IMG/VR virus record: IMGVR_UViG_3300034117_002447
Coordinates: 124,001-188,000 of that record
DNA length: 64,000 nt
Reading direction: 5' to 3' (one strand)
In this document: piece after piece, positions 8,684 to 43,365 of the stretch
Numbering within the stretch: position 1 is the stretch's first letter
How the letters are laid out: each line of letters starts with the position of its first letter
The notes under the pieces: generated by a model
Told to the model about the DNA's origin: nothing
Database searches by the model: none
What the model saw: the letters and a program-made list of their open reading frames with translations, nothing else
Position numbers and translations under genes: made by a program

Positions 8684-9115
8684 ATGCAGAATTATATTAC
8701 CGATTTCAATGGATTTGCGCTAACTGAGTCGGCTCAGAATTACACCGATCAGATGGAACTCCATAGGCTGGGGATTCCCATTCCTGGGTTTCGTGTGCTG
8801 ATAGTCCGGGTAGACTGGGAAAAGATTGGTCGAAAGGATTTTTCCGGTAATCTAGAAACCTTTATGAAGTGTTGGTTCATGGAGGCCTATCCGGCTCCCA
8901 ATGCTGACGGTGAGGACTCTTGGTACGAGTATCCACCGGCTGAACTTATTCGCATGGTCAAGGCCGACGAGCCTGGAGATGTTGAGTTTGTTGACGGGTT
9001 TATCATGAATCTAGCTAAAGAACACGATGTAGATCTTATTTGGGAATTGGGAGACAAGACCTGGCGGGAAGTACCCAGCGGGCGATCTGTACCCCGACTG
9101 GATCTCTTAAGATAA
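8684..9115 (+). CDS. Acidic late protein with capsid-targeting-like N-terminus
   Basis: MQNYITDFNGFALTES; TATAAATA at 8671. Confidence 0.75.
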   Translation: MQNYITDFNGFALTESAQNYTDQMELHRLGIPIPGFRVLIVRVDWEKIGRKDFSGNLETFMKCWFMEAYPAPNADGEDSWYEYPPAELIRMVKADEPGDVEFVDGFIMNLAKEHDVDLIWELGDKTWREVPSGRSVPRLDLLR

Positions 9116-9117
9116 CC

Positions 9118-9210
9118 TTAACCTCTACGTTCTATCCTCTTCAATCCGGAGTAGACTATAATAGCTAGGAACCACAGGGTAACCCCCAGCCACACATATA
9201 CCGTTTTCAT
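9118..9210 (-). CDS. 30-aa single-TM peptide (not in ORF track)
   Basis: MKTVYVWLGVTLWFLAIIVYSGLKRIERRG*; follows hairpin 9231-9260. Confidence 0.5.
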   Translation of the reverse strand: MKTVYVWLGVTLWFLAIIVYSGLKRIERRG

Positions 9211-9283
9211 GAAGTTATCTATATACCCCAAAAAGGGATCCCTTCTGAGGATCCCCTTTCTTTGTTTTGGGCTAAGTGTTGTG

Positions 9284-9664
9284 TTATGCAGTTACCTTAC
9301 GGCCACGTACAGTATTGTATAGGGCATTCATAACTCGCATGTCTGACTTACGGCCAGTTACGACAGCGCTTACCAATTTAGAGTCTACCCCTAATTTCGT
9401 AGCTACCATTGAGTTATCTCCACGACGTTTGCGAGCAGAGATTACCTCTAACTTTTGAGCTGGAGTTAACTTTGCGTAACTCATACCTTTACGGCCAGCA
9501 TTACGACCCGTTGAAACGGTAGCTGTTACGGTTACCGCTGAAACAGTAGACCCAGTAGATTTTTTAGACTTCGCAGTTTTTGCGGTCTTTGTTGTTGAAG
9601 GAGTTGCGGCCTTTACCGCTGGTGCAGATACCTTGGTAGCTGCGGTTGCTTTTGATTTTCTCAT
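9284..9664 (-). CDS. Histone-H1-like basic protein with C-terminal HTH-like domain
   Basis: K/A/T/S-rich N-half (KSKATAATKVSAPAVKAATPSTTKTAKTAKSKK), then SMVATKLGVDSKLVSAVVTG. Confidence 0.7.
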   Translation of the reverse strand: MRKSKATAATKVSAPAVKAATPSTTKTAKTAKSKKSTGSTVSAVTVTATVSTGRNAGRKGMSYAKLTPAQKLEVISARKRRGDNSMVATKLGVDSKLVSAVVTGRKSDMRVMNALYNTVRGRKVTA

Positions 9665-9929
9665 GTTAAACAAATTATTTTTGATTTAAGGTTAAGGTAC
9701 CAAAGAATCCCGGCAATTGGTCGCCCGGCCTGAAAAAGATTGGGCGTGCCTGCACCGCCGCAAAAACCCCCTAGGCGGGGCCGCGACGTGGAGACCTCTG
9801 TGAAGCTGCGGAAGACCCGTGACTATTATGTACCGGTGAGACGGTCGCCTAATCAGTCGGAAAGCTGTTCAGGTAATAAAAAAATGGGAACCTGCTCAAG
9901 ATAAATAACTTAAAATATTTTAGTATACT

Positions 9930-11183
9930 ATGAACTTAATTAAAGGCTATAGCCAATGGTTAAACGAAAACCTAAACGCTATAAACGAAAACTGGTCAAT
10001 CGATTCAGTTACTCTCAGTACTGATGACTTTAGCATTGACGAGGCAAAATACGATCAGTACATCGCAAGTCAAGCTGGAGCACAATTTAGACTATTCACG
10101 CAAGAGGTTGCAAAGTCTAACATCCAAAACATTAAAAAGAAAGAGGCTCATCAAGAAATTTTGGGAAGCCTTGCTAAACACGGCCAAACGGCTAAAAAAG
10201 GTTTCTTGGGAATCTTTGGCGGTAAGAGCCTAGACGAAGTAGTTACCGCTACTCTTGATAGTTTGATTGCAGGTCAATCAAAAATTGCCTACAGCAAAAC
10301 AACGGTGGACTACAATCCTGGAGCTGACGGTACAGGTAGAATCATGACTCAGGGTCGAATTGGGATTAATTCACTGGAAATTGATACTGATCCACGTTGG
10401 AGTAAAGCAACCTCTAGTACAGGTATGTTGTTGGGATTTGTTAACGCATATAACCAAAATGCATTTGAAATGGGTCAAGGTCAATTCATCTTGAGCCAAA
10501 GAATGGGAGAAGACGGTTACCTAGATATTACAACTACTCCAGTAGTAGACGCTGACAATCTATATTTGTACACTCAACAATTACTTGGCGACCTTGCTGC
10601 AGGTAAGGATCTTAAAGTAGACGTTGCTCAAACTGGAGGTTCCGATGCAGTTACTGGCAAATTCGCTGCAGAATTCGCAGCTGGTTCTGACCAAGTTACT
10701 CCAGCTATTCAAGCTGAGGTTGCAAAAGCAGTAGAGTTATGTTTAGCTAAATTCCCAGCAGGATCACGCCCTGATAAATTTACTTTAACTTCTGGTGCAA
10801 GTACTGAATGGAACGGTAAACAAATGCCTAAGGCTGACGGAACTGGTGCAGTAACTCCAAAGGATGATGCAACTAAAAATCAAGATCTTGCTTACCGTCG
10901 TGGTGTTGCTTTCATGAATGCTCTTAACTCTGGACTTAAAGCAAAAGGACATCCAGGTTTTGATGCATACGAAGTTGCATGGTCAATCGGTGCAAGTGGT
11001 CAACCTGCAAATGCAGCTGACCGTTTCGTTGACCTAAACATTGAAAAAAATGCAGTTAAGCCTAAAGCTGTAGAAACTACTAAGACTACTGCTGTTTCAA
11101 CTGGAAATGCAACTACTAACGTTAGAGGAAAAGCTCAATTCTTTGAATTGAAACTTACTTTAACTGCAGCAGCCGCTAAATAA
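9930..11183 (+). CDS. Late protein, capsid-targeting-like N-terminus, C-terminal OmpA-like domain
   Basis: MNLIKGYSQWLNEN; FAAGSDQVT...SGASTE...NQDLAYRRGVAF resembles the OmpA_C N..LS..RA motif. Confidence 0.7.
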   Translation: MNLIKGYSQWLNENLNAINENWSIDSVTLSTDDFSIDEAKYDQYIASQAGAQFRLFTQEVAKSNIQNIKKKEAHQEILGSLAKHGQTAKKGFLGIFGGKSLDEVVTATLDSLIAGQSKIAYSKTTVDYNPGADGTGRIMTQGRIGINSLEIDTDPRWSKATSSTGMLLGFVNAYNQNAFEMGQGQFILSQRMGEDGYLDITTTPVVDADNLYLYTQQLLGDLAAGKDLKVDVAQTGGSDAVTGKFAAEFAAGSDQVTPAIQAEVAKAVELCLAKFPAGSRPDKFTLTSGASTEWNGKQMPKADGTGAVTPKDDATKNQDLAYRRGVAFMNALNSGLKAKGHPGFDAYEVAWSIGASGQPANAADRFVDLNIEKNAVKPKAVETTKTTAVSTGNATTNVRGKAQFFELKLTLTAAAAK

Positions 11184-11758: not shown

Positions 11759-11843
11759 GGCTTGTTTATTACTTGGTTATATAGTTATTATACCTAAAAA
11801 CTCGAATAAATAACCTAGTACAAAATAAAAATAGACATAGTTA

Positions 11844-13463
11844 ATGAAACATTCAATTATTAAAGGCTACTCTAGCTGGTTAAACGAAAACTTGTTAATC
11901 GCAGAAGCTGAAGGAACTGATATTGGTGCTCTTTACAAAGCTGGCGATCGTGCAGGTTTAGTAAATGCAGCAATGGCAGCAGACTCTGCTGAAATAAAAG
12001 CTCACCCAGCTTACGAATCTGTAATGCAATGGTGGAAAAACGGAGAGGGCGACCTCAACTTATTCAAATCGCTTCTTAAAAAGAGTTCATCTGCTAAAAC
12101 TGACAGATTACGTTCCCTAAAATCGATATATTACTGGACAGGCGGCGGTACGGTTAAGGGTGCAGCTCCTAGAGCAGATATGTTTTATAAAGTAGCAGAT
12201 TCAATTATTGCAAACGGTGCAAAGGCTGGGGTAACTCCAGAAAAGCTAGCTCAACTTAAACAAGCGGTTGACTTATTAAAGACTGCAAAGACTGAAGGTT
12301 TCGAATTAAGAACATCAGCTCTATTCGGTTCAATTATACCAGGTGCTCTAACTGATGGAGTATTCGATACTGGCGGTAAAAAAATTGATGTGATTGCTGA
12401 ACTAGCCAAGCCTCAGGTCATGGATACTCTTAAGAAAGCACTAACTGCTTACCGATTAAATACTAATGCAAGCAAGGAATTAATGGTAGATCCTTTAACT
12501 TCTGCTAAATTCCTGATTGCACAGAGAACCAATAAAGCAACAGTCAGTCAATACTGGATAGCCTCAATGTCGTTAAGCGATACTGAAAAGAAGTCTATGC
12601 TAGATAACTTTAAAGCAAAAGCTGAAGCGTATGCTGCTCGTAAAAAGGATCCTAATGTAACTTTCGATAAAGCAATTTTAGTTGCTACGAATTTATACAT
12701 TGCACCAAAGAACGAAAAAATTACAGTTGTCGCTGGAACACCAGCTGCACCAGCTGCCCCAGTTGTTCAGGCTTTTTCATATCCTGAAAGTGCAAACGGT
12801 AACGCTAAGAGCCCAGCTTTCCAAAAGGGTTTACAGTTATTTCCAGATGATGGAGTGACTATTCAACCTACTGCTCAAGCTGAATTAGCCGCAACTGTTA
12901 AATCTGCAGTAGATGCAGTTAAAGCAGCCGGCGGTACAATTACAGCTGTTTCAACTTGGGGTTATGCAAGTACTTCACAAGTAGGAACGACTTACAAGTC
13001 AGCTGATAAAACCTCAAAGAAGGAAAATAACGTTGCGTTAGCAAACGATAGACTTGCGTCTATTAATAGCGCGCTAGCTGCCGCTCTTACTGAAAACGGA
13101 ATAACTATTGCACCAACCGTTGATGCTAAAAATTTAGCTGAACCGAATAGAGGTCCTGACTGGACTGATAAAGATAAAACTGATGCTAAGTGGGGTAAAC
13201 CTGGAGCAAGAACTCCAGAGTACCAAGCAACTTACGGACCATGGAGATATGCAGTTGCGTTCTTCCAGTTAACGTATACAATCACATCAACCGAACCTAC
13301 TCCAGTTAAGTCAACTGCAACTCCTAGTGGAGAATGGAACTCAGTAATTACATGGTCTGATGAATCATTCCAAATTGAGTTACCTAGAATTCAATTCGGA
13401 ACCGCTTTACCTAAAGTACCAATGTATAAAGGTGGAAGCTCTACTGCATGCCCGATATTTTAA
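11844..13463 (+). CDS. Late protein, capsid-targeting-like N-terminus, C-terminal OmpA-like domain
   Basis: MKHSIIKGYSSWLNEN; FPDDGVTI...GYASTSQV...NNVALANDRLASI. Confidence 0.7.
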   Translation: MKHSIIKGYSSWLNENLLIAEAEGTDIGALYKAGDRAGLVNAAMAADSAEIKAHPAYESVMQWWKNGEGDLNLFKSLLKKSSSAKTDRLRSLKSIYYWTGGGTVKGAAPRADMFYKVADSIIANGAKAGVTPEKLAQLKQAVDLLKTAKTEGFELRTSALFGSIIPGALTDGVFDTGGKKIDVIAELAKPQVMDTLKKALTAYRLNTNASKELMVDPLTSAKFLIAQRTNKATVSQYWIASMSLSDTEKKSMLDNFKAKAEAYAARKKDPNVTFDKAILVATNLYIAPKNEKITVVAGTPAAPAAPVVQAFSYPESANGNAKSPAFQKGLQLFPDDGVTIQPTAQAELAATVKSAVDAVKAAGGTITAVSTWGYASTSQVGTTYKSADKTSKKENNVALANDRLASINSALAAALTENGITIAPTVDAKNLAEPNRGPDWTDKDKTDAKWGKPGARTPEYQATYGPWRYAVAFFQLTYTITSTEPTPVKSTATPSGEWNSVITWSDESFQIELPRIQFGTALPKVPMYKGGSSTACPIF

Positions 13464-13509: not shown

Positions 13510-14055
13510 TTATAGCTTAACCGCAAACAGACAGTTTGCGTATGCTGAGAATCGGTTCTTTTGAGTATCATAGCCGCCGTTTATATCGAATGCTGCTACT
13601 GTTACTTTTGGGTCGAGCAGCGCTGCATTATGACTAGCTGATTTAACCCATTCGTTGAATATTATAATAACGGTTGATTTATCAACGTTAACCGATTTTA
13701 GTGAGTTATAATTACTGCTGATTTTATAATGAGCACCGACATTTTCTCTGAAACTATATCGTGAAAAGTGTTTCTTCCAGTCCTGATCAAATTTTTCAAT
13801 TCGGGTAAGAGGGCCGGTGTAGTAAATTCCATCTGGAGTTAATGGATATTCGTAGTGCTCCAATGTGTCAGCACGTATCATCCAATTGACATGAAGAGTT
13901 ACAGCAGAGTCGAGAGTAGCTGAGTATTCTACTGGACTAAGCCCGTGACTTGCTCTGTGAGCATTCACCAATTCTAAAAAGATTTTATTTTCAGAATCTT
14001 GAGCAGTTGCGCTAATCGCAAAACTAAAAAGTATGATATGTATTAGCTTTTTCAT
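13510..14055 (-). CDS. Secreted CAP/SCP-domain protein
   Basis: Signal peptide; LELVNAHRASHGL, LEH, ENVG, EWVKSASHNAALLDP. Confidence 0.85.
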   Translation of the reverse strand: MKKLIHIILFSFAISATAQDSENKIFLELVNAHRASHGLSPVEYSATLDSAVTLHVNWMIRADTLEHYEYPLTPDGIYYTGPLTRIEKFDQDWKKHFSRYSFRENVGAHYKISSNYNSLKSVNVDKSTVIIIFNEWVKSASHNAALLDPKVTVAAFDINGGYDTQKNRFSAYANCLFAVKL

Positions 14056-14118: not shown

Positions 14119-15081
14119 ATGAGTAAAGTTAGAATATTATCAATAGACGGTGGTGGATTAAGAGGAATCGTTCCATTACTTATCCTTAAAGAAATTGAAA
14201 ATCAGCAAGGTAAAAAAATACACGAATTATTTGATGTCATAGTAGGTACCTCAACTGGCGGTATTATTGCATGCGGATTAACTTGTACGAAAGACGGAGT
14301 TAATCCTTATTTAACAATCGACCAGCTAATAGAACTTTACACAACTAAAGGTAATGTTATTTTCCCTTATAGTAAAAATATATTAGCTAAAGTAATTAGA
14401 GGAGTTAATTCAGTATTTAATCCTAAATTCTCTCCAAAAGGTTTAGACGGTTTATTGGAAAATTATTTTGGTGATATGATGATATCGCAATCACTAAAGC
14501 CTATCATCGTTAGTTCGTATGACCTAAAGAACAATGAAGTTATTATGTTTAAAACTAGAACTGCTAAATGGTCTAAAGAACGATTTGATGTTAGATTAAA
14601 AGATGTTTGTCGGGCTACGTCAGCCGCGCCGACCTACTTACCGTCATACGAAATGGTGTTTGATGGCAAAGACCGGATCTTAGTGGATGGTGGTGTTTAC
14701 ATTAACAATCCAGCAATGGCAGCAGTTGCTGAAGTTCTTAAAACAAGACCGGGTATTAAGATAGAAGATATTGAATGCTTATCGTTAGGCACCGGAAATC
14801 ATTCAGAATCGTTAGGTATTAAAACTGAAAGTTGGGGTATAGCTAATTGGGCACAACCTATAACAACAGTTATGATGCAAGCCTCTTCTAAATCAGTTGT
14901 TTACGAATGTCAACAAATATTAGAAAAGTATTTAAGAGTTCAATTAGAGATTGATGATGAAAAGAAAAGCGACATGTCAGATTCAAGACCGGCTACTACT
15001 CAATACATTGTTGATAAAGTAAATAAAGATATTATTAGTAATAAAAAAACAATGACTAATATTAAAAATTTCCTTAAATAA
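14119..15081 (+). CDS. Patatin-like phospholipase
   Basis: ILSIDGGGLRG, GTSTGG (GxSxG), SAAPTY, DGG. Confidence 0.95.
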   Translation: MSKVRILSIDGGGLRGIVPLLILKEIENQQGKKIHELFDVIVGTSTGGIIACGLTCTKDGVNPYLTIDQLIELYTTKGNVIFPYSKNILAKVIRGVNSVFNPKFSPKGLDGLLENYFGDMMISQSLKPIIVSSYDLKNNEVIMFKTRTAKWSKERFDVRLKDVCRATSAAPTYLPSYEMVFDGKDRILVDGGVYINNPAMAAVAEVLKTRPGIKIEDIECLSLGTGNHSESLGIKTESWGIANWAQPITTVMMQASSKSVVYECQQILEKYLRVQLEIDDEKKSDMSDSRPATTQYIVDKVNKDIISNKKTMTNIKNFLK

Positions 15082-15086
15082 AGAAT

Positions 15087-15740
15087 ATGAAAACCGTTAA
15101 ATTATTCATAGTATCACTAATTTTATTAATTACGGCTACTGGCTTTGTTCCAGAGCCAACTACTGTTAAATTAGAACACAAAGGCTATACTGCTTATTAT
15201 AGTAAGCAGTTACACTATTCTCTTAAGGTTGAATGGTGGGACACAAAAGCCCGTCTTGAATGTCCAGGCTCAAAGGTTGCACGCAAGGACAGATTCGCGC
15301 CAGATCCATTACTTCCAGCTGAAACTGATCTTATGGAAGATTATGTAGGTTCAGGAACCGATAGAGGTCACATGTGCCCGGCTGCAGATAACCAGTGCAG
15401 CCCAGTTCTACAAGAAGAGTGCTTCTACTTTTCAAACATGGCTCCTCAATACCATTCCTTAAATGCTGGAGACTGGAAAAGATTAGAGGTCCGAACCAGA
15501 GAACTTGCTAGCCAATACGATTCAGTTATGGTATGGTGCGGTTCAGTCGGAGCAGCCAAGAAAATTGGAACGACGTCAGTGCCGACTAAATGTTGGAAAG
15601 TTATTTTTATTAAGAGGACAAAAACGTTTGAGGCTTATATTTTTAATAATACACCCGACAAACCGGTGGGTCTTGATAAATGGAAGGTTAAACCAGCTGA
15701 TGTAGAGAAATTGACAGGATATAGGTTCAAGGTTAAGTAA
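15087..15740 (+). CDS. DNA/RNA non-specific endonuclease (NucA/EndA-like) with signal peptide
   Basis: DRGHMCP, SNMAPQ...NAGDWKRLE, VPTKCWKV. Confidence 0.93.
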   Translation: MKTVKLFIVSLILLITATGFVPEPTTVKLEHKGYTAYYSKQLHYSLKVEWWDTKARLECPGSKVARKDRFAPDPLLPAETDLMEDYVGSGTDRGHMCPAADNQCSPVLQEECFYFSNMAPQYHSLNAGDWKRLEVRTRELASQYDSVMVWCGSVGAAKKIGTTSVPTKCWKVIFIKRTKTFEAYIFNNTPDKPVGLDKWKVKPADVEKLTGYRFKVK

Positions 15741-15785
15741 TAATGAAACTGTGTTTGGATAAATAATAAAAAAACCAGATTACAA

Positions 15786-16382
15786 ATGGCAGACATCGCA
15801 CAACAATTTGCTGGATTACCAATTGAAGACCTTATTGTGTCTCCGATTGTAGGTATGGCAAAAGGGCAAGCAAAATTAAACGATGTAACGTGGAAATATA
15901 TTTCTGAAGTTGCATTCGTAACAGACAAAGACGGCAAAACTCAAGCTCGTTCTTTGGATGTAGAAATGAACCGAGTTGTTACTGACGGTACAACCGGCGA
16001 ACAAACAGTTCAAACTTTATACTCAAAGGTTCCTATGTTACCTTTAGTTCCACTTCCTTCATTAGCTATCACATCAGCTGATATTGAATTCTCAATGGAA
16101 GTAAAAACTTCTGAAGTAGACAAATCAAGCACTGATACTGAATCTTCAATTCAAGCTTCTGCTTCTGGCGGATTCTGGGGAATGAAGTACTCGGTGAGCA
16201 TGGCTGGTAAAGTTGCGACTCACAAAGAGAACACACGTAGCACAGATAACTCTGCAAAGTACAATGTAAAAGTACACGCTGAGCAATTACCTGCAACTGA
16301 AGGTATGTTAAAGCTTTCTGACTATTTGACTCAAATGTTAGAGCCAACTTTAATTCCTCTTACGGCTGATCCAAACAAGTAA
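15786..16382 (+). CDS. DUF2589-family protein
   Basis: FAGLPIEDLIVSP...Q.KL; VPMLPLVPLPSLAI..ADIEFSMEV; AKYNVKVHAEQLPATEGM. Confidence 0.8.
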   Translation: MADIAQQFAGLPIEDLIVSPIVGMAKGQAKLNDVTWKYISEVAFVTDKDGKTQARSLDVEMNRVVTDGTTGEQTVQTLYSKVPMLPLVPLPSLAITSADIEFSMEVKTSEVDKSSTDTESSIQASASGGFWGMKYSVSMAGKVATHKENTRSTDNSAKYNVKVHAEQLPATEGMLKLSDYLTQMLEPTLIPLTADPNK

Positions 16383-16407
16383 TCAGTAATCGGACAATAA
16401 ACCCCTA

Positions 16408-16436
16408 AGGAGACCAGTTTATCTGGTCTCTTTTTT
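16408..16436 (+). terminator. Intrinsic terminator between the DUF2589 genes
   Basis: gagaccag-tttat-ctggtctc-tttttt. Confidence 0.8.
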
Positions 16437-16489
16437 GTTTAAACCGATTCAGCTTGAGTAGTATAATTATTAATACAAATCGCACAACT

Positions 16490-17203
16490 ATGGCTAAAAT
16501 TAATCTAGAAGAATTACTCGGCGGTCTACAAGAAGCAGCGTTAATCGTTCTCGGTATTCAGGAAAGACAACACATTAATACTATTTCAAAGTACTTTACA
16601 CCGGAAGGCGAACCTCTGACTAAAACATTTTTGCTCGGAGACAAGACCTTGGAAATTCCTCTCTATATCTTAGCTGACCATTCGTCAATGGGACTAGAAG
16701 AACTGGAAATAGACTTTGATATCAGATTACTTGCATCAGACGATAAGACACCATCCAGTCTTAAAGAGAATATTTTACCGATTTTTAAGAAGATTGAGGA
16801 TCAAACTATTCGTGGAGTTCAAGAGGCTCTAGTTAAATTAGGAGAGCCATATAAGACTCTACTTGGGAAAACCGGCGCCAAGAAGAATGGAGTTGACGGA
16901 GTTATTGGCCCAAAATGTAGAGAAGCCCTAATGCGTTACCAATTAAAAAACAGGATTCCGCAGACTGGTGAAGCAGACGACGAGACTTGCAAACTGCTTG
17001 GAGTCTCAACTGCGTCTGACTACACGCATACTGTAACCAATATTTCAGTTGACAGTAATGCACCAAACTCTGATAGCAAAGCTGGCATGGCAACCGTGAA
17101 AGTTAAATTCAAAAAGGACGAAAAACCTGAAGCCGTTTCCAGACTGGTTGAGATGTTAATTCAAAAATTAGATGATGTAGGTCATACTGACAAAACCTCT
17201 TAA
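16490..17203 (+). CDS. DUF2589-like partner protein with inserted peptidoglycan-binding domain
   Basis: LEELLGGLQEA..., IPLYILADHSSMGLEELEIDF; insert VQEAL...GVDGVIGPKCREALMRYQ...TGEAD; ends ATVKVKFK...PEAVSRL. Confidence 0.7.
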   Translation: MAKINLEELLGGLQEAALIVLGIQERQHINTISKYFTPEGEPLTKTFLLGDKTLEIPLYILADHSSMGLEELEIDFDIRLLASDDKTPSSLKENILPIFKKIEDQTIRGVQEALVKLGEPYKTLLGKTGAKKNGVDGVIGPKCREALMRYQLKNRIPQTGEADDETCKLLGVSTASDYTHTVTNISVDSNAPNSDSKAGMATVKVKFKKDEKPEAVSRLVEMLIQKLDDVGHTDKTS

Positions 17204-17569: not shown

Positions 17570-17758
17570 TTAGTGTTGATAATCGTCTTCGTAATCTTCT
17601 TCGTCTTCTTCTGCTTCACAATGTTCTTTACAATCAGAGCAAATATCGCCCATCATAATAGGAGCACCGCAACAGTTTGAAGTCTCACCAGAGAAAGCAT
17701 CACTTGGATCCCAGCTCTCGTTTACGAATTTCGTAAAACTGTTAACTAAATTTTTCAT
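17570..17758 (-). CDS. Small Cys-rich acidic protein, capsid-targeting-like N-terminus
   Basis: MKNLVNSFTKFVNES; SNCCGAP...ICSDCKEHC. Confidence 0.8.
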   Translation of the reverse strand: MKNLVNSFTKFVNESWDPSDAFSGETSNCCGAPIMMGDICSDCKEHCEAEEDEEDYEDDYQH

Positions 17759-17778: not shown

Positions 17779-18240
17779 TTAAGGTTCGTACTCTTCAGAG
17801 GTCTCATCATCTGCTAACCCTAAGGCTTCAGAATTAAAGTTGTCCCAAGCTTTAATAGAGTCTTTCATTGTCTTATTAAGTTCAACTAATTCGCTCTTTA
17901 ATGTCTCGACCTTTGTTTTATCAGCCTCTTCGACTGGACTCTTACGAATCTCATTAGGAATTTCTAAAAATTCTTCTTGTTTCTTTTTAAAGGCTTTAAT
18001 TGCATCTCTTCTAGCTGTGTCTAGTTCTTGATACTTTTCAATTTCTGATTCGGCTGTGTCGTCTTCAACCGGAGCCTCTGCTGGAATCCCGGCATCAACT
18101 GGAGTCTCAGCTGGAACTTCTGCAACCGGTTCCGCTGGAACTTCTGCTGGAGCTTCAACTGGAGCGTCTGGTGTTACCGGCGTATCAACTGCCTCTAGTT
18201 TCTCAGATTCATCAAGCCATTGTTGATATTTATGAATCAT
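17779..18240 (-). CDS. Pro/Ala/Glu-rich coiled-coil late protein, capsid-targeting-like N-terminus
   Basis: MIHKYQQWLDES; PAE repeats; late box at 18258. Confidence 0.8.
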   Translation of the reverse strand: MIHKYQQWLDESEKLEAVDTPVTPDAPVEAPAEVPAEPVAEVPAETPVDAGIPAEAPVEDDTAESEIEKYQELDTARRDAIKAFKKKQEEFLEIPNEIRKSPVEEADKTKVETLKSELVELNKTMKDSIKAWDNFNSEALGLADDETSEEYEP

Positions 18241-18291
18241 TACTTATGATTTTCTTGTTATTTATCTGCGCTTGGGATAAATAAACCTGTA

Positions 18292-19089: not shown

Positions 19090-19096
19090 AAAAATC

Positions 19097-19405
19097 ATGG
19101 CTAATATGAAAATTCAAAATCTCGGAGACATTAAGAAGTTTTCATTCGGTGAAATGACATCAAACGACAGCGGTAAAACATCTGGAACATCAAGCGCTGG
19201 ACTTTACATCATTTTTATTGGAGGAATCTGTTTTTTTCTAGGTTGCATTGACAAAATGTTTATAGACAAGTCTATTGACATTATTAATCAATCAGTAATG
19301 TTCACTACAATTGGAGCAGCTCTACTTGGAGTTAAGAACATAGTTAATGGGAAAAAGGTTAAGGCTAAAGAAGAACCTACTTCACCTGAACCTTTAAATT
19401 CTTAA
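19097..19405 (+). CDS. Two-TM membrane protein (possible holin)
   Basis: AGLYIIFIGGICFFLGCI and VMFTTIGAALLGV, charged C-terminus. Confidence 0.65.
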   Translation: MANMKIQNLGDIKKFSFGEMTSNDSGKTSGTSSAGLYIIFIGGICFFLGCIDKMFIDKSIDIINQSVMFTTIGAALLGVKNIVNGKKVKAKEEPTSPEPLNS

Positions 19406-19447: not shown

Positions 19448-19636
19448 TCATTTGATATGACCAGTAATCTCTTTGTAATACGCCCATAACTCTTGGCACT
19501 TTTCGTATTCTTCCTTGCTTTCCAAGTACTTAATTATATCTAGGACTTCATTCCAGTAGGCGGATGTGATTCCTTTTTTATCGACATCTTTATACTTTCT
19601 AGTCCATTCTCTCTCGTTTGCTATATCGATTGCCAT
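19448..19636 (-). CDS. Small protein with UVR-like EEYEKC motif
   Basis: IKYLESKEEYEKCQEL. Confidence 0.65.
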   Translation of the reverse strand: MAIDIANEREWTRKYKDVDKKGITSAYWNEVLDIIKYLESKEEYEKCQELWAYYKEITGHIK

Positions 19637-34421: not shown

Positions 34422-35012
34422 TTAGTTATATAAAAAGTTACGAATTAATAGTTTAATATTTTTGAATATTAAAGATTTCCTAGAATTAAGAGATTTGGTA
34501 AAAGAAACTGACCAGTTTGAAGCATTATTTGCCTCAATTGACTTACTGTCAAATTTGTAACCAATCATAAAGCCTACATCAAATAACGATTCCACTAATT
34601 GTATAATTTGATTCACTAAGTCTGAGTCAGTTTTTTGCGAATCAAAGTCAGCAGCGGATGGAGCCAGTAATTTAAGTGCTGATTTTTTAAGTGTACCAAT
34701 TGACTTTAATTGATTTTGTATTTCCATATAAATGAAAGTATATGCCTCAATTACCAGTTTATCAGCAGTTCCTGGCGAATTTAATAGAGCAGCTTGGACC
34801 ATTGCTGGAGTTTTACCAACTAGCCAGGTACTAAATTTATCAATTACCTGGTATACGTTAACAATCTTATTTGCTTTATCTAACTCAGTTTTATAAGTAC
34901 TTTTAAATTCAGAAATACTCTTAAGTTGATTAGCTGTACACTCATTAATTGAACTAGTTAAAATAGCTGGACTAAGTGCTTCATTTGTAAAAGTTTTAAA
35001 GGTCTTAATCAT
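34422..35012 (-). CDS. Hypothetical protein, capsid-targeting-like N-terminus
   Basis: MIKTFKTFTNEA; ATAGATAA variant box upstream. Confidence 0.75.
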   Translation of the reverse strand: MIKTFKTFTNEALSPAILTSSINECTANQLKSISEFKSTYKTELDKANKIVNVYQVIDKFSTWLVGKTPAMVQAALLNSPGTADKLVIEAYTFIYMEIQNQLKSIGTLKKSALKLLAPSAADFDSQKTDSDLVNQIIQLVESLFDVGFMIGYKFDSKSIEANNASNWSVSFTKSLNSRKSLIFKNIKLLIRNFLYN

Positions 35013-38567: not shown

Positions 38568-39038
38568 TTAGGAAAGTCTGTCTAAAATTATAAGTTGGGC
38601 TCGCGAAACTTTTGAGTAAGCCTCTTTGATATCGATGAATCCGGCCCAGTCAATCTCTTCTGCCTGAAGTTGGCTCTTTGGAATAGTTAATGACTCCAGC
38701 TCAATCTCAGATAGATCCTCAATTCGGAAAACGAAATAGTGTAGTGCATTCTTGTACTTGCCGTCTTTATCGTAAACTTCAACTGTCTGCACGGGCAATT
38801 CTAATTTATCTGGAGAAAGATAGATTCCTGTCTCTTCGCTAAGTTCTCGTAGAGCAGCATTCATTAGGTCTTCGCCAGCTTCGACCTTGCCCTTTGGAAT
38901 TCCCATGATTGGTCTAACCCAACTTCCATTAGTTGGATGAACTAGTAAAATTTTTTGATTGTATAATATTGCTACACCGGCCGTATCGTGGCCAGCTGAT
39001 GACTCAGCTAAGAATTCAGAGAATGCTTTAATCTTCAT
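38568..39038 (-). CDS. NUDIX hydrolase with capsid-targeting-like N-terminus
   Basis: MKIKAFSEFLAES; Nudix box GKVEAGEDLMNAALRELSEETGI. Confidence 0.92.
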   Translation of the reverse strand: MKIKAFSEFLAESSAGHDTAGVAILYNQKILLVHPTNGSWVRPIMGIPKGKVEAGEDLMNAALRELSEETGIYLSPDKLELPVQTVEVYDKDGKYKNALHYFVFRIEDLSEIELESLTIPKSQLQAEEIDWAGFIDIKEAYSKVSRAQLIILDRLS

Positions 39039-39045
39039 TTAGTTA

Positions 39046-40044
39046 TTATACTAAAGCTGCCTTTATTGCTGCGATACTCTCAGTATACGTGACCGTATCG
39101 AATCTGTATGCTGTGTAAAAACCGGACCAAAGCGTGAGACCTCTTATTCCAACTGTCCAGGCCGCAAATTTTTCAGGCCATTTTTGGGTAGTACCCATAA
39201 TCTCGTCGATTTCCCCAGCAATACCTGTTAAAAAACCGCCAGATTTACCGGACGCTGTCCACATCTTGGCAAGTTGATCAGCGGAGAATTTTGGTGAAAT
39301 TAGCATGTACAAACCGTGCATAGCTGCACTATCAGCAAATGATGTAACTGTCTCATTTAGCTTAAGATCAACTGCGTCCATGATCATCTTAATATCAGCA
39401 TCTGACTCAACTGAGCCGGCTTTCTTGTATTTTGAGGTAATTGTGGTTACTTGTGTAGGTAAATCTCCACCGGTCAGCTTAATCCAATTGTCTGCGATAT
39501 TACCGTCACCTAGTAAAAAGCTGGCATTTGCTGCTTTTTCGATTCCTGCGAAGGAGCCGCCTAATGCTTTAACCTTATTGGTTTGAGCAGTAACCCATTT
39601 AATATGATCAGGAGTCCATGCCTTTCCGAATTTTTGAATCGATATTGTGATTAATGCAGCAATAAATTCATACATTTTACCCTTTGGGTCATATTCGGCA
39701 ATCTTATTAATGTCAATAGATGAGCCGGAAACTGGAGACGACGAGGTTGCCGCTGCTAGCTTAAGACTTCCTTTTACTGGCTTTAAGTCTGTTCCGATTT
39801 GATAAGCGACGTTAATCATGTCTTTTCCGTTATCGTGTTTAACCATGAACGTATAGTTACCAGCTGCCTTCTTTGATTCAACTTCATCCATGAATTGGTT
39901 CCATTGGTTTGCATAAGGTCCTCCATTTTGACCAGATAATAGTTTAGTTAAACCGTCAGCTGTTTGCATATCAGCGGCCTCATTGACCAGTAAGTAGCCA
40001 TGAGACTTTTTCTCTAAAATAAGCGCGTAATTTGAAATATTCAT
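39046..40044 (-). CDS. Hypothetical late protein
   Basis: 332 aa; N-terminus ...YLLVNEAAD. Confidence 0.8.
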   Translation of the reverse strand: MNISNYALILEKKSHGYLLVNEAADMQTADGLTKLLSGQNGGPYANQWNQFMDEVESKKAAGNYTFMVKHDNGKDMINVAYQIGTDLKPVKGSLKLAAATSSSPVSGSSIDINKIAEYDPKGKMYEFIAALITISIQKFGKAWTPDHIKWVTAQTNKVKALGGSFAGIEKAANASFLLGDGNIADNWIKLTGGDLPTQVTTITSKYKKAGSVESDADIKMIMDAVDLKLNETVTSFADSAAMHGLYMLISPKFSADQLAKMWTASGKSGGFLTGIAGEIDEIMGTTQKWPEKFAAWTVGIRGLTLWSGFYTAYRFDTVTYTESIAAIKAALV

Positions 40045-40068
40045 TTGTTGTAGTATATTTATTTTTTA

Positions 40069-41073
40069 TTAAAATGGACTAGGCCTTTGAACTTTACGGT
40101 CGACTGGCTTTTCTACTTTCTTATTAGCTGCATCGATTTGAGCTTGAGTTAAGTTCACAAAGGCTGCATCTAATTTAGCAGAAATCTCTGCATTAATTGA
40201 GTCAACTGGAGTACCGTTATTTACAAGTTTTCCAATTGCATTAGCTGTACCGCTTCCATATTTACCGTCTGCTCCGAATTTACCAAGAGCCGTTGCTGCG
40301 TCTCCGCCTAGTGTCTTGATCTTCTTCTGTAGATCTTGAACCTTTTGATTAAATCCTGGGGCTTTCTTAAGATCAACGAAGGTAGTTGAGTTCGATTGAG
40401 AGCCTTGTGGCGAGTCGACCGTTTGTGTAGAAGTAGTAGGTGAAACTGTCGTTGTATCAGTAGTCGTAGGTTTATCAGTAGCTGATTGGCCTTCGCTTTT
40501 CATGTAAGACGGATAAACTTTATCGATTTCAATAAGCTTGCCCGATTTATCCCTTGCTGGTACTGGCTGCGCCAACTTAATATCAATTAATTTTTCTTGA
40601 TGCCATACAGCTAACGGAATCTTTGAACCTGAAACGGTCGCGGTTGCGATTGGTTCAGCTTTAGTTACATCATAGAATACGTCGGCTGCAGGTTTGTCAA
40701 CTCCAGCAGATTCGCCTGTGTGTTGTCTTCTATACGTAACAAAGGCAATTTCAGCTTTAGCTACCTCTTTTCCAACTAAATTCGTCTTGTTCATAACTCC
40801 ACTGTACACAATACCAAGGGTCATGCTCGCAGGAGTTCCTTCAAATTTAGTAGTAGTCCACCAATTTTTAAAATCGCCGTTCATTACTAAACTGTCGATA
40901 ATCGACTGAATTGGTGTTGCATTGCTGATTGAATCAGCAGATCCACTCTTTAGTACAACTTTCCATCTAGCAAGTTCGCCGGCTTCTGGTGAAATCTTAG
41001 TTATGTTTGCTTTATCGACTGCTTCAGTTAACGAAGTTGCTCTAAAGCTTTCAAATGTTTTAACAAAGGTCAT
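40069..41073 (-). CDS. Late protein with C-terminal peptidoglycan-binding-like domain
   Basis: MTFVKTFESF...LTEA; VQDLQKKI...GADGKYGSGTANAI. Confidence 0.75.
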   Translation of the reverse strand: MTFVKTFESFRATSLTEAVDKANITKISPEAGELARWKVVLKSGSADSISNATPIQSIIDSLVMNGDFKNWWTTTKFEGTPASMTLGIVYSGVMNKTNLVGKEVAKAEIAFVTYRRQHTGESAGVDKPAADVFYDVTKAEPIATATVSGSKIPLAVWHQEKLIDIKLAQPVPARDKSGKLIEIDKVYPSYMKSEGQSATDKPTTTDTTTVSPTTSTQTVDSPQGSQSNSTTFVDLKKAPGFNQKVQDLQKKIKTLGGDAATALGKFGADGKYGSGTANAIGKLVNNGTPVDSINAEISAKLDAAFVNLTQAQIDAANKKVEKPVDRKVQRPSPF

Positions 41074-41094
41074 TTGTTTCTGTTATTATTTTAA

Positions 41095-43365
41095 TTATTT
41101 ATTTCCGAATGAAAGGCCTTTAACTGAGAAGAGCCCTTCGTTTACTGGAGGTAACTTAATTTCAGGTTCTTCGCCCGATTGAATAAGTTTCAAGGCTTCT
41201 GCTTTTATACCAGCAGCCTCTTCCGGTCGGATTTTTCCCATACGAACCATCTCTTGAATGGTGCTGTCTAACCGAGACTTATCGACTAGATTTACATTAA
41301 TTACTCCAGATTCAGGATCGTAAACATCTGCGAAATAGGCTTGGACGACAGGCTCATTATAGTCAAGAGCATGTTGAACATCAATTGATGTATCTAATCC
41401 TAGTGAAGCTAGTACCTGTTTTGAGTAGTCTGTGCTCTTCTTTTGGAATTCAGCTGCTTGTGCAGGATCTTCTCCCATGTTAGCAGTTCCTCCTAAATTT
41501 GCAGTACTTCCTGGAAAATCTGCAACGAATGAGCCGGTTGTTGCTTGAACAGCCGCCGCCTGTAATCCGCAATCTACCTTTGCGACAGTCCTTTGTGGGT
41601 TTGAACTTTCTTCTGCTTCTTCCAATGCAGATATTCCTGTTCTAACTAACGATGAAGTTGCGCCAAGAGCTACATCTCCTGCTTTATTTGCGCCGGCTTG
41701 GATAATACATTCAAGTGATCCGTATTTTTGCCAAACTAATCTAGCTACCAGGTTAAGAACTCGCTTGAAAGGTACGGCTCTCATTCCAATAGCGCCGCCT
41801 TTCTTTGTGAGAATTTCAAGAGTCTTAACGCTACCATTAAATTTAGCAACTCCCTCGATGAATGCTTCCGGCTTAGCAACAAACGGTGCAAATGCTCTAA
41901 TTTCAGATTTAGATAAGTTCTTAGCTATTGCTGGATTAGTTAAGAACACTTCAAAGAATTTCTTAACTTCTTGAGGGTTTCCTCCTCTAGCTAATCTAAT
42001 TAAGTGATCTCCACCTGGTCTCCAGCCGGCTGCACCTAACAGTTTAACTGCCTCAGGATCTTTCATTATCCTATCAACTGACAGTTTAGCTTGTCCAATT
42101 AATTCATTTTCCATTTTTGCAGCGATCGCAATGTCTTTCTGCTTGGAAGATAATTGGCTAATTGAATCCATGAATTTCGTATTTGAAGTAACTGTCTGCT
42201 TTAGATCACTTAAGTAACCTCCTCTAGCTCTAATGTACTTATCTGCTTGAGTTGCATCAAAGTCTTTAAGTGCTGCACTGATATCTGCTCCGACTTCAGA
42301 TGAAGTTTTTCCAGCTTTAAGAGCTTGATCTTGAGCACCTAGGGCAACTTCTTTACGAGCAGCTTTAGCCAAGTCATCCGCACTTTGAGCAATTTCTTTT
42401 CCTACTCCAGGCTTTGTAAGAATTTGAGTAGCTGTATCGAAATTTCTACCAATCATCGAGACGTTCACTACAATAGAGTCTACTAATTTTGAAATTTTAA
42501 ATCCAAATTTTCCAGCCATACCAAAGGTTGCAAGATTAATCGCAGTATCCATAAACCCGGCGATCATTCTAACTACTGAGACTGCGGTGTTTAGGAAAAA
42601 CTTAGCAAGTCCTTTAAATAAGCTAATCACATTGTCTAATAAACTCTTTCCGCCGATTCGGATAATTCCATCTTTTAGTGCAATTACTCCTTTTTCTAGA
42701 GCAACAACGTCCTTCCCAGATCTAAATATGAGAGGTAGAATTTTTTCCAATAACGGCATTGCTGGTTTTAGTACTATCTTCAATACATCAGAGGCTTGAG
42801 TAATATCAATTGCTGAAAGAAGGCTTAATACCATTGAGACGTACTCCCCTTTATACAATGAAATTAGAGCAGATAGAACGTTTGCAACAATATCAATAGG
42901 AAAACCTACCCATGTGAATGGCACAAGTCCAATAATATCCAGCACAAGACGTAAGATATTAAGACCCATTTCTACTGGATCCGGATCACTTACTAGGCTA
43001 GCTAAGAAGTCTCCAATAGACCCTAATAGACCCTCGTTAAGAGTTTCAATTGTTTCTAAATAAGATTCATTGATTCTTAATTCAATCGTATCATATCCAG
43101 CTCGAGCTAAAAAATCTTCCTTTCGAATAATATCTTGAATATCTTCAAAATTCTCAAATAAGTATACTTGGTGAGCAAAAACTTCTGATTCAGAATGTTT
43201 TCTTTTGATTGTAACTGGCGTTGCCAAAATACTAAAATCAACTTTATCTAGAGCCTCAAAAAAGGCAGCAGGTATTTGATTAAAGTATTGGGTCAGCTTA
43301 TCAGTAGAGTTTCCTGAAGTCGATAACGATTCAAAAAACTGTTGGGACGAAACTACGTATGACAT
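41095..43365 (-). CDS. Large late protein with pre-toxin-TG-like hydrophobic segment
   Basis: LDIIGLVP...DIVANVLSALISLYKGEYVSMVLSL; several LNE/FE motifs near the N-terminus; late box at 43388. Confidence 0.7.
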   Translation of the reverse strand: MSYVVSSQQFFESLSTSGNSTDKLTQYFNQIPAAFFEALDKVDFSILATPVTIKRKHSESEVFAHQVYLFENFEDIQDIIRKEDFLARAGYDTIELRINESYLETIETLNEGLLGSIGDFLASLVSDPDPVEMGLNILRLVLDIIGLVPFTWVGFPIDIVANVLSALISLYKGEYVSMVLSLLSAIDITQASDVLKIVLKPAMPLLEKILPLIFRSGKDVVALEKGVIALKDGIIRIGGKSLLDNVISLFKGLAKFFLNTAVSVVRMIAGFMDTAINLATFGMAGKFGFKISKLVDSIVVNVSMIGRNFDTATQILTKPGVGKEIAQSADDLAKAARKEVALGAQDQALKAGKTSSEVGADISAALKDFDATQADKYIRARGGYLSDLKQTVTSNTKFMDSISQLSSKQKDIAIAAKMENELIGQAKLSVDRIMKDPEAVKLLGAAGWRPGGDHLIRLARGGNPQEVKKFFEVFLTNPAIAKNLSKSEIRAFAPFVAKPEAFIEGVAKFNGSVKTLEILTKKGGAIGMRAVPFKRVLNLVARLVWQKYGSLECIIQAGANKAGDVALGATSSLVRTGISALEEAEESSNPQRTVAKVDCGLQAAAVQATTGSFVADFPGSTANLGGTANMGEDPAQAAEFQKKSTDYSKQVLASLGLDTSIDVQHALDYNEPVVQAYFADVYDPESGVINVNLVDKSRLDSTIQEMVRMGKIRPEEAAGIKAEALKLIQSGEEPEIKLPPVNEGLFSVKGLSFGNK

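Follow-up and report, generated by a model that had tools for sequence, protein, structure and literature searches.

The DNA analyzed (the window) is a 64,000-nucleotide stretch, positions 124,001 to 188,000 of IMG/VR record IMGVR_UViG_3300034117_002447, belonging to an uncultured ~271-kb myovirus, a distant T4 relative whose nearest relatives point to a Bacteroidota host. The window contains a T4-type large terminase gene (57565-59523, minus strand) and a gp16-like small terminase gene (59520-60263, minus strand), which place the phage in the T4 superfamily. PHROG terminase families were matched at an E value of 8e-51, although the Pfam DNA_Packaging hit was weak. TerL is 30-38% identical to the proteins of PAU, PTm1, cyanomyoviruses, and LR7565xx huge phages. 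A gp6-like baseplate gene lies at 60509-62203, and a gp15 homologue lies just beyond the window. According to the original prediction, about 15 late genes between 8684 and 43365 begin with a motif resembling the T4 capsid-targeting sequence (CTS), and the phage uses this motif as a modular address tag to package unrelated enzymes for delivery at infection. All 15 open reading frames exist at these positions. Genes are designated below by their low coordinate, which for minus-strand genes is the stop-codon end; the true start of the open reading frame listed at 24558 is the ATG at 24591.

Tagged genes

Eight genes start with a strict I-K-x-[FY]-x-x-[FW]-[LIV]-x-E-[SNA] tag, in which the Glu is at residue 11 to 15. 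Gene 9930 (9930-11183, plus strand; 417 residues, function not identified) starts with MNLIKGYSQWLNE followed by N (Glu13), contains a second INEN site at Glu20, and is preceded by a late box at 9901-9908. Gene 11844 (11844-13463, plus strand; 539 residues) starts with MKHSIIKGYSSWLNE followed by N (Glu15) and has a late box at 11806-11813. Its orthologues at 33-52% identity keep KSY..WL.E. A possible OmpA-like C-terminal domain is a lead only, since it was suggested by the Atlas and since Pfam and PDB profile searches were negative. Gene 17570 (17570-17758, minus strand) encodes a small Cys-rich protein of 62 residues starting with MKNLVNSFTKFVNE followed by S (Glu14). It lies 20 nt downstream of late gene 17779 on the same strand, and its orthologues have NFKDFLNES. 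Gene 17779 (17779-18240, minus strand; 153 residues, Pro/Ala/Glu-rich) starts with MIHKYQQWLDE followed by S (Glu11) and has a late box at 18258-18265. The tag is present in all 10 orthologues retrieved, at 46-66% identity.

Gene 18292 (18292-19089, plus strand; 265 residues; late box at 18277-18284) encodes a Zn-metallopeptidase with an HExxH motif and starts with MKLLSTYSDWLNE followed by N (Glu13). The AF2 model has a pLDDT of 81, but its fold matches to minigluzincin/M48 peptidases are weak (E values of 0.17 to 0.7), as is the Pfam M78 match. Gene 24591 (24591-25844, plus strand; 417 residues) starts with MENKILNFKQFLTE followed by A (Glu14) and encodes a two-domain cell-wall hydrolase comprising a VanY/M15 peptidase (Pfam VanY, E value of 1.3e-12, residues 38-139) and an endolysin-like (GH19-type) C-terminal domain (residues 201-360, matching PDB endolysins 7r6s at 1.2e-5 and 9ms6 and 4ok7 at 2e-4). 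This gene overlaps the end of gene 24236 and so sits in the same late transcript; relatives keep the tag although their domains are shuffled. Gene 34422 (34422-35012, minus strand; 196 residues, function not identified) starts with MIKTFKTFTNE followed by A (Glu11), has the variant upstream box ATAGATAA, and was found at 99% identity in L089, one of the related loci retrieved. Gene 38568 (38568-39038, minus strand; 156 residues) encodes a Nudix hydrolase (Pfam NUDIX, E value of 8.9e-15, from residue 18) and starts with MKIKAFSEFLAE followed by S (Glu12). Residue 19 aligns with residue 10 of untagged T4 NudE, indicating that the tag is an N-terminal add-on. This gene lies 7 nt downstream of gene 39046 and has its own TATAATA-type box, i.e., an early-type promoter.

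Five additional genes have gapped or degenerate tags, but their orthologues have cleaner ones, YKINESA being among them. Gene 8684 (8684-9115, plus strand; 143 residues; late box at 8672-8679) starts with MQNYITDFNGFALTE followed by S (Glu15), a variant with one extra residue. Its orthologues carry the canonical SFAKFLNES or SFAEFLTES, and searches of Pfam, PHROG, and NCBIfam gave no hit. Gene 21472 (21472-23442, plus strand; 656 residues; late box at 21441-21448) starts with MINSLRDIVNE followed by S (Glu11), the aromatic positions being lost in this genome, whereas orthologues have SFIDMVNES or SFIEAINES. Its GNAT-like assignment remains a lead, resting on an RGxGLG motif read from an alignment consensus and on faint Atlas leads. 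No PDB profile hit and no relation to T4 Alt was found, and the AF2 model is poor (pLDDT of 59). Gene 24236 (24236-24601, plus strand; 121 residues; late box at 24190-24197) encodes a peptidoglycan-binding protein (Pfam PG_binding_1, E value of 1.2e-6) with the gapped tag MIHNFNQFTEKTNE followed by G (Glu14); orthologues have TFTEFNSNLNEG or KFDEFNQELNEG. Gene 39046 (39046-40044, minus strand; 332 residues, function not identified) has a long gapped tag, MNISNYALILEKKSHGYLLVNE followed by A (Glu22), and only a weak DUF1326 hit. It follows late gene 40069 by 24 nt, and its orthologues have MNISNYARGLELSKYKINE followed by SA. Gene 40069 (40069-41073, minus strand; 334 residues; late box at 41095-41102) starts with MTFVKTFESFRATSLTE followed by A (Glu17), a gapped tag with the same layout as T4 IPI (MKTFKEFTSTTTPVSTITEA). 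Its orthologues have TFEEFKKPSVIDEA, and its PG_binding_1 hit is weak (E value of 0.07).

The two remaining genes are doubtful. Gene 29791 (29791-30267, plus strand; 158 residues; late box at 29756-29763) starts with MKRYVALFESFEES, in which LFESFEES deviates by having Glu where the hydrophobic residue should be. It has no orthologue among the loci retrieved and only one look-alike N terminus, MKHIKLFESFSEES, at position 2700 of related locus L112. Gene 41095 (41095-43365, minus strand; 756 residues; late box at 43388-43395) starts with MSYVVSSQQFFESLS and has no [LIV]xE[SNA] in its first 30 residues. Its orthologues read ADQYFSQGAEPVNEK, and no homologue was found in GenBank phages.

Frequency, conservation, and promoter context of the tag

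To determine whether the tag exceeds chance, we searched the first 30 residues of the 89 called genes for [FW][LIVT]xE[SNA] preceded by an aromatic residue three positions earlier. The eight strict genes were recovered, in comparison to 1 of 497 internal 30-residue windows and to a mean of 0.52 (maximum of 4) in 2,000 shuffles of the N termini. A looser form of the motif gave 11 of 89 genes, against 0.89 in shuffles. A position-specific scoring matrix (PSSM) scored the eight core tags at 20 to 33 bits (32.9 for 9930 and 17779, 30.8 for 11844, 23.3 for 34422, and 20.7 for 17570), although these tags helped to build the matrix, whereas the best internal window scored 6.6 bits. Thus, the observation is confirmed, with 13 of the 15 genes well supported.

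The tagged proteins share nothing except the tag. In an all-against-all BLASTP comparison of the 15 proteins, the only pairs with an E value of <0.1 were N-terminal tag alignments of 14 to 22 residues; for example, 9930 shares only its first 14 residues with 11844. Orthologues in 14 related loci keep the tag, which is conserved in orthologues at 33-78% identity. For the HExxH protein, 64 homologues were found, and an alignment of 49 sequences (39-95% identity to the window protein) showed that W10, E13, and HE..H are invariant, while residues 8, 9, and 12 are variable. Conserved positions are encoded by synonymous codons (TAT/TAC, TTT/TTC, GAA/GAG, six Leu codons, and both Ser codon families), indicating conservation at the protein level.

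The late box, ATAAATAA, resembles the T4 late promoter TATAAATA. It was found within 60 nt upstream of 10 of the 15 genes and of 18 of all 89 genes (Fisher P = 1.6e-5 for all 15 genes and 4.4e-4 for the 13 supported genes). The other five genes lie directly downstream of a late-box gene on the same strand (17570, 24591, 39046, and 38568) or have a variant box (34422). Eight of the 18 late-box genes, including the patatin-like phospholipase and DUF2589 genes, carry no tag.

Comparison with T4 and related jumbo phages

A PSSM built only from this phage clade ranked IPIII (14.2 bits) and IPII (11.7 bits) first and second among the N termini of 234 T4 open reading frames. The only hit of 6 bits or more in T4 gp23 was AQAFGSFLTE followed by AE, which places the Glu at residue 65; a 65-residue propeptide is removed from gp23 (PMC9026906). 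In the IPIII CTS, MKTYQEFIAE, targeting depends on residues 4 and 7 and processing on residues 8 and 10 (PMC9026906). These are the four positions conserved here. The internal proteins of T-even phages are diverse and share only the CTS (PMC3012670).

Related Bacteroidota-type jumbo phages carry the same tags beside a gp23-type capsid gene. In related jumbo and mega phages, the gene order is gp20 portal, a protein of 610 to 730 residues, and a Gp23 capsid protein. The N-terminal ~165 residues of the 610- to 730-residue protein are homologous to T4 gp21 (hhalign, 95%, E value of 2.6e-8) and are followed by an invariant [LIV]NE[SA] and then by 14-residue repeats, Y-x-x-[YM]-[LIV]-A-E-[NKH] (42 nt × 10.7 copies in LR745206). 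This protein is a T4 gp21-like protease fused to a scaffold made of repeats of the tag motif. The capsid proteins carry YAEFHSINEN or YAHYHSLNEG near residue 40. Tagged open reading frames sit beside these genes (six in related locus L224 and four in LR756500), and PSSM scores of ≥12 occurred at 22 to 43 N termini against 3 to 6 internal windows out of about 10,000.

No prohead protease, portal, or major capsid gene of the phage under study was found in the window or in the flanks examined, from 8.4 kb before the window start to window coordinate 97.6k. Four scans of the sequence collection with capsid or protease alignments returned other lineages but never contigs of this genome. No homologue of three of the cargo proteins was found in cultured phages.

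Interpretation of the tag

Together, these results support the interpretation given in the original prediction, i.e., a T4-type targeting and propeptide tag used as a portable module on unrelated late proteins, and we consider this explanation likely. The tag is fused to at least 13 unrelated proteins, clustered at 8.7 to 41 kb of the window, of this uncultured jumbo phage, so that much of the putative packaged, probably injected, protein cargo can be read from the sequence. Of the enzymatic and binding labels originally proposed, Nudix, M15 plus GH19-like, peptidoglycan-binding, and HExxH peptidase are confirmed by sequence, the GNAT-like and OmpA-like labels are not, and nine of the 13 proteins have no confirmed function. 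In this view, the two aromatic residues would dock the newly made late protein onto the scaffolding core of the assembling prohead, a gp21-type prohead serine protease would cut after the Glu of [LIV]-x-E and release the mature protein inside the head, and the proteins would be packed alongside the DNA and most likely leave with it at the next infection. The analysis establishes the tag, its enrichment, conservation, modularity, and late-promoter context, its equivalence to the T4 CTS and to the gp23 cleavage site, and, in related phages, its co-occurrence with a gp21-like protease-scaffold and a gp23-type capsid protein. In contrast, docking, cleavage, packaging, and ejection in this phage are inferred from sequence alone, no virion proteome existing for any member of the clade. 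Against this explanation, no prohead protease, portal, or major capsid gene of this genome was found in the window or in the flanks examined, the tagged cell-wall hydrolase could simply be the lysis endolysin, the Nudix gene has an early-type promoter, 8 of the 18 late-box genes carry no tag, two of the 15 tags are weak, and three cargo proteins have no homologue in cultured phages.

An unlikely alternative is that the tag is a prohead-core propeptide but that the tagged proteins are assembly factors or core components, cleaved and largely expelled or degraded during head maturation, as are T4 gp22, gp67, and gp68, rather than cargo delivered to the next host. The same motif builds the scaffold repeats and follows the protease domain in related phages, several tagged proteins, such as 17779, are small, low-complexity, or acidic, and 9930 and 11844 have a second [LI]xE[NA] site a few residues on; T4 core proteins are cut at many such sites (PMC9026906). 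However, several tagged proteins (Nudix, M15 plus endolysin-like, and Zn-peptidase) are folded enzymes with no plausible assembly role, the site is single and N-terminal, with internal motif hits at background level, and the gene set varies between close relatives, as in T-even internal-protein loci.

Still less likely, the tag may be a signal for something other than the capsid, such as chaperone or membrane docking, targeting to another virion part, or degradation or regulation through a host or phage protease. No protease or capsid gene of this genome could be tied to the tags, three tagged proteins act on or bind peptidoglycan, as judged from domain matches, which would also fit export or tail association, and the phage tmRNA tag peptide contains F..LVNES. 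Against this possibility, the tag has no hydrophobic core, lipobox, or twin-arginine motif, it matches the T4 CTS and the gp23 cleavage site position by position, and the tagged genes of relatives cluster around head genes.

Finally, a shared 5′ cassette (late promoter, leader, and first codons) spread by recombination, or a translation-initiation enhancer, without function as a peptide, could account for the co-occurrence of tag and late box in a mosaic, variable region but is already disfavored, since the conserved residues use varied synonymous codons, the spacer between box and ATG varies from 4 to 38 nt, five tagged genes have no box of their own, eight late-box genes have no tag, and the tag persists in orthologues at 33-40% identity with only four positions fixed.

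Identity of the phage and occurrence of the N-terminal tag

The 43,000-62,500 stretch of the window, which was the only part compared at the nucleotide level, had no near-identical DNA in GenBank phages. The large terminase (TerL) was 100% identical to that of several IMG/VR contigs of 270-271 kb. It is of the T4 type and displays 30-38% identity with the terminases of Sphingomonas phage PAU, Tenacibaculum phage PTm1, cyanomyoviruses, and the LR7565xx "huge phages." The window also encodes a gp16-like small terminase, a gp6-like baseplate wedge protein, PhoH, and a sigma factor, and a gp15 homologue lies just outside, indicating that this is an uncultured jumbo myovirus of the wider T4 superfamily. 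The capsid-gene relatives of its nearest terminase relatives infect Bacteroidota or are huge phages of unknown host, which suggests a Bacteroidota host.

Among the 89 genes called, the strict motif [FW][LIVT]xE[SNA], preceded by an aromatic residue three positions earlier, was found in the first 30 residues of 8 genes, in 1 of 497 internal windows, and on average 0.52 times in shuffled N termini (maximum of 4 in 2,000 shuffles). A position matrix assigned 20 to 33 bits to these eight tags, whereas the best internal window in the whole gene set scored 6.6 bits. Since the eight tags contributed to the matrix, the independent tests described below carry more weight. Of the seven other genes listed in the original prediction (genes are designated by their lower window coordinate), five have gapped or degenerate tags in this genome (8684, 21472, 24236, 39046, and 40069) and two are weak (29791 and 41095). 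The Glu residue is located at position 11 to 15 in 11 genes and at positions 17 and 22 in two gapped ones. Thus, the observation that some 15 late genes share such an N-terminal motif was real and far beyond chance, although 13 rather than 15 genes are well supported.

A ATAAATAA box was present within 60 nt upstream of 18 genes, including 10 of the 15 listed genes, and this association was significant (P = 1.6e-5 for all 15 genes and P = 4.4e-4 for the 13 supported genes). Four of the five tagged genes devoid of a box of their own lie immediately downstream of late-box genes on the same strand, and the fifth (34422) is preceded by a variant box, ATAGATAA. The same ATAAATAA box precedes the gp6-like baseplate gene (60509-62203). 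Late expression of the tagged genes together with head genes is inferred from promoter motifs only. A second promoter-like box, TATAATA(ACTA), recurs before early and middle genes. The window contains three phage sigma-factor genes (4818-5816, 784-1545, and 55924-56553, all on the minus strand), one sigma-70-like with regions 1.2 to 4, one ECF-like, and one with regions 2 and 4 located beside PhoH in the late structural block.

Three results indicate that the tag is a peptide signal. First, an all-against-all BLASTP comparison of the 15 proteins gave E values below 0.1 only for alignments of 14 to 22 N-terminal residues, and different Pfam domains follow the tag. The tag therefore sits on otherwise unrelated proteins, and paralogy was rejected. 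Second, orthologues in 14 related loci (44-78% identity) retain the tag, often in a cleaner version where the copy in the window is degenerate: SFAKFLNES for 8684, SFIDMVNES for 21472, TFTEFNSNLNEG for 24236, YKINESA for 39046, and TFEEFKKPSVIDEA for 40069. Relatives also carry tagged genes that the window lacks, so the putative cargo set varies. Third, the conserved positions are encoded by varied synonymous codons, and a signal at the nucleotide level was rejected. Conservation is clearest for the Zn-peptidase family (18292), which has 64 homologues in metagenomes. In an alignment of 49 sequences displaying 39-95% identity with the window protein, W10 and E13 are invariant, residue 7 is Phe in 82% of the sequences and Tyr in others such as that of the window, residue 11 is hydrophobic in the sequences read, and residues 8, 9, and 12 are free. 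On inspection of the sequences, Sec, Tat, and lipoprotein signals were also rejected, since the tags are amphipathic and acidic with no hydrophobic run, twin-arginine motif, or lipobox, and look different from the true signal peptides of the window (11255, 13510, and 15087).

Comparison with the T4 capsid-targeting sequence and other processed propeptides

In order to compare the tag with the T4 capsid-targeting sequence (CTS), we used the matrix built only from the uncultured clade to score the N termini of 234 ORFs from 150 kb of the T4 genome. The two best scores were those of IPIII (14.2 bits) and IPII (11.7 bits), both starting with MKTYQEFIAEA. The fifth-best T4 N terminus was that of the 54-residue hypothetical protein gp61.1 (positions 18966-19130 of the T4 locus L120), which starts with the CTS-like sequence MKTFKEFIKEDM. 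IPI (MKTFKEFTSTTTPVSTITEA) has the gapped layout seen in gene 40069 (MTFVKTFESFRATSLTEA). The only hit of 6 bits or more in T4 gp23 was AQAFGSFLTE|AE, which places the Glu at residue 65, and a 65-residue propeptide is removed from gp23 (PMC9026906). The same review reports that mutagenesis of the IPIII CTS showed targeting to depend mainly on residues 4 and 7 and processing on residues 8 and 10. These are the four conserved positions of the tag, whose consensus is [FY]xx[FW][LIV]xE. T-even internal proteins are diverse and share only the CTS (PMC3012670). The comparison with T4 made in the original prediction is therefore accurate in detail.

The T4 tag (MKTYQEFIAE|A) and those found here, such as MKIKAFSEFLAE|S and NFKQFLTE|A, have in common a length of about 10 residues, aromatic residues at positions equivalent to 4 and 7, Ile, Leu, or Val at position 8, and Glu at position 10, followed by a small residue. 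In both cases, the tag is carried by unrelated proteins that share nothing else, encoded by late genes (predicted here from promoter motifs) whose set varies between relatives. However, the phage is only ~30% identical to T4 in TerL, the tag usually starts at residue 2 to 6 rather than 2, and Trp is common at the second aromatic position. There are 13 to 15 tagged genes, compared with the three internal proteins of T4 that bear a CTS or a CTS-like propeptide, and several of the putative cargo proteins are recognizable enzymes rather than small basic proteins. In relatives, the protease is fused to the scaffold.

T4 gp21 cleaves gp23, gp24, gp22, gp67, gp68, and Alt at [L/I]-x-E during maturation. 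The tag ends in [LIV]-x-E-[SNA], and T4 gp23 is cut at FLTE|A, identical to the tag of gene 24591, although the cleavage specificity is only inferred for the phage studied here. The propeptide of Alt (MELITELFDE) was not recognized by the clade profile (score of -16.5). In the giant phages phiKZ, 201phi2-1, and SPN3US, which have large genomes and big cargo sets, many head-internal proteins, some of them ejected, are processed after Glu by a gp21-related protease (PMC9026906). Those phages cut after a different short motif and remove longer, nonuniform propeptides, and no short shared N-terminal address is known to have been described for them. The phage does not fit this type of system. Its terminase relatives, the capsid genes of those relatives, and its baseplate relatives are T4-type and Bacteroidota jumbo phages rather than phiKZ-like, and the residue preceding x-E is L, I, V, or T rather than a small residue.

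The closest terminase and capsid relatives are the Bacteroidota-type jumbo and mega phages LR745206, LR756500-LR756504, Tenacibaculum PTm1 and pT24, Chryseobacterium MA9V, Flavobacterium MaF61, and the Prevotella Lak phages. LR756500 and many IMG/VR relatives carry the same N-terminal tags, whereas the first 37 kb of PTm1 show no strong tag. Our literature searches found no description of such tags for these phages.

Head genes, scaffold repeats, and interpretation

T4-type portal, protease, scaffold, and capsid genes were found neither in the window nor in about 42 kb of flanks, extending from 8.4 kb before the window start to window coordinate 97.6k. A phmmer search with 30 T4 structural proteins against all window proteins gave nothing significant. 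HMMs of the capsid and protease families gave no hit among the six-frame ORFs of the window and of the clade loci L001-L118 or among the called genes of L446, a locus extending beyond the window end. Comparison by hhalign of the 646-, 375-, and 232-residue late proteins with the capsid and protease profiles gave probabilities of ≤0.14%. Four IMG/VR scans with capsid or protease alignments, using different first sequences, each returned at least 80 loci of other lineages, and a scan of genome contigs returned two unrelated fragments. A profile search of a 5.8-billion protein set led to a 269-kb contig belonging to a different phage with a GC content of 30%. Loci L172, L208, and L366 were considered as fragments of this genome but were rejected because their GC content or late-box usage did not fit. 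One window protein looks scaffold-like but has no detectable homology, namely a 512-residue late protein (45981-47519, minus strand) that is encoded behind three ATAAATAA boxes, has a coiled-coil-like C terminus (weak Pfam hit), and contains many [LIV]xE[SN] sites (VVLES, LVNEN, YVNEN, and YVMEN; 2.3 per 100 residues).

The wider clade provides indirect evidence. In LR745206, LR756500, and many IMG/VR contigs, the gene order is gp20 portal, a 610- to 730-residue protein, and a Gp23 capsid protein. The first ~165 residues of the 610- to 730-residue protein are homologous to T4 gp21 (hhalign probability of 95%; E = 2.6e-8), covering the GELxHP and SSR motifs. This domain is directly followed by an invariant [LIV]NE[SA] and then by a run of 14-residue repeats, Y-x-x-[YM]-[LIV]-A-E-[NKH], which form 10.7 copies of a 42-nt unit in LR745206. 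Thus, in these related jumbo and mega phages, the gp21-like prohead protease is fused to a scaffold region built of tandem repeats (YSEY[LI]AEN...) of the same motif as the tags (positions 6547-8670 of L125, the LR745206 locus, 8135-9979 of L224, and 8043-9941 of L212, the latter two also being loci from related phages). The capsid proteins carry YAEFHSINEN, YAHYHSLNEG, or YAHYHELYEN about 40 residues from the N terminus. Tagged ORFs sit next to these head genes, six in L224 (FLNES, WLNEA, FINEA, and others) and four in LR756500. Over three sets of 75 to 83 loci, scores of 12 bits or more were obtained for 22 to 43 N termini, compared with 3 to 6 of about 10,000 internal windows. The capsid propeptide, the scaffold repeats, the junction following the protease domain, and the cargo tags therefore all carry the same motif, as expected if a single protease cuts all of them and the tag docks to the scaffold.

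Together, these results support the interpretation put forward in the original prediction, and a T4-type capsid-targeting and processing tag is, with good confidence, the best explanation. The existence, enrichment, and conservation of the tag rest on the sequence analyses, whereas packaging, cleavage, and ejection of the tagged proteins are inferred. The main rival explanation is that some of the tagged proteins are prohead-core components rather than delivered cargo. The mechanism is known from T4; what is of interest here is the evolutionary distance over which the code holds, the size and enzymatic content of the putative cargo set, and the link between tag and scaffold repeats seen in relatives. 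Packaged, coinjected proteins are the first phage products to act in the cell, and in T4 they include inhibitors of host defense. If the T4 address code holds in this distant lineage, the cargo proteins of uncultured phages can be listed from sequence alone, with 13 to 15 in this phage, most of unknown function, and further sets in relatives, providing a focused list of candidate anti-defense and host-takeover proteins. The code appears conserved across the T4 superfamily, which would constrain models of how cargo docks to the scaffold, and a natural modular packaging tag for Bacteroidota-type phages could be used to load reporter or enzyme cargo, as has been done with T4.

A more tentative possibility, which goes beyond this explanation, is that the tag is a one-unit mimic of the scaffold's own repeat. 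In this view, the prohead protease of this superclade of T4-related jumbo phages is fused to a scaffold built from tandem 14-residue units, Y-x-x-Y-[LI]-A-E-[NK], the capsid protein propeptide carries the same unit, and any protein acquiring one such unit at its N terminus would coassemble with the scaffold and be trimmed by the same protease. This would explain why the code has stayed the same from T4 to Bacteroidota mega-phages and would make the packaged cargo of thousands of uncultured phages, a pool of likely first-strike anti-defense and host-takeover proteins, predictable from sequence.

Putative cargo proteins and neighboring features

Four of the tagged proteins were identified by sequence. 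Gene 38568 encodes a Nudix hydrolase whose fold starts after the tag. Gene 24591 encodes a protein with a VanY/M15 domain and a C-terminal domain matching phage endolysins, including 4ok7. Gene 24236 encodes a protein with a PG_binding_1 domain. Gene 18292 encodes an HExxH zinc peptidase with a good AF2 model (pLDDT of 81) and weak fold matches to minigluzincin/M48 enzymes. The GNAT-like and OmpA-like labels of the original prediction are leads only. The former relies, for 21472, on an RGxGLG motif in an alignment consensus and on faint Atlas leads; the protein was unrelated to T4 Alt, and its AF2 model (pLDDT of 59) was too poor to use. The latter relies, for 11844, on an Atlas lead that was not confirmed by Pfam and PDB profile searches. 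The remaining tagged proteins have no recognizable family, searches of PHROGs and NCBIfam having given essentially nothing, and tblastn searches with 21472, 41095, and 11844 found no match in GenBank phages. No cultured member of the clade is known.

The tagged genes are interleaved with early or middle genes for nucleotide metabolism and DNA repair on the opposite strand, an arrangement that resembles the variable internal-protein regions of T-even phages. A gene with a histone-deacetylase-family domain (19599-20594, minus strand; Pfam E = 1.2e-15) also lies between tagged late genes. Late-box genes devoid of a tag include those for a patatin-like phospholipase (14119) and a DUF2589 protein (15786). 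The same stretch (14119-17203, plus strand, and 13510-14055, minus strand) encodes a second DUF2589 protein with a PG_binding_1 domain (16490), for which no late box was found, an Endonuclease_NS with a signal-peptide-like N terminus (15087), and a CAP-family protein with a signal-peptide-like N terminus behind an early-type box (13510).

A GC-rich (0.48), noncoding stretch of 550 nt (8100-8660) lies at the switch from the leftward early gene block to the rightward late genes. It contains iteron-like direct repeats (ACTCCAGGAG in four copies, a 20-nt unit in three copies, and a 23-nt unit in three copies), had no Rfam match, and may be an origin or a regulatory region. Just beyond the window end, positions 2614-13806 of L446 (window coordinates ~78k-89k) contain an ORF of 3,730 residues that is fibre-like by size alone. 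In another strain, this ORF is split into genes of 1,774 and >900 residues, and several assemblies break at this position, indicating that the locus is hypervariable. An island of glycosyltransferase and methyltransferase genes lies next to it. Finally, the phage encodes a tmRNA (62300-62666, plus strand; Rfam RF00023, 129 bits) whose tag peptide, as predicted by ARAGORN, is GNTNFWSLVNESVNAPVTEELLAA. This peptide contains F..LVNES, which resembles the [LIV]xE[SNA] tag and cleavage motif, possibly by chance.
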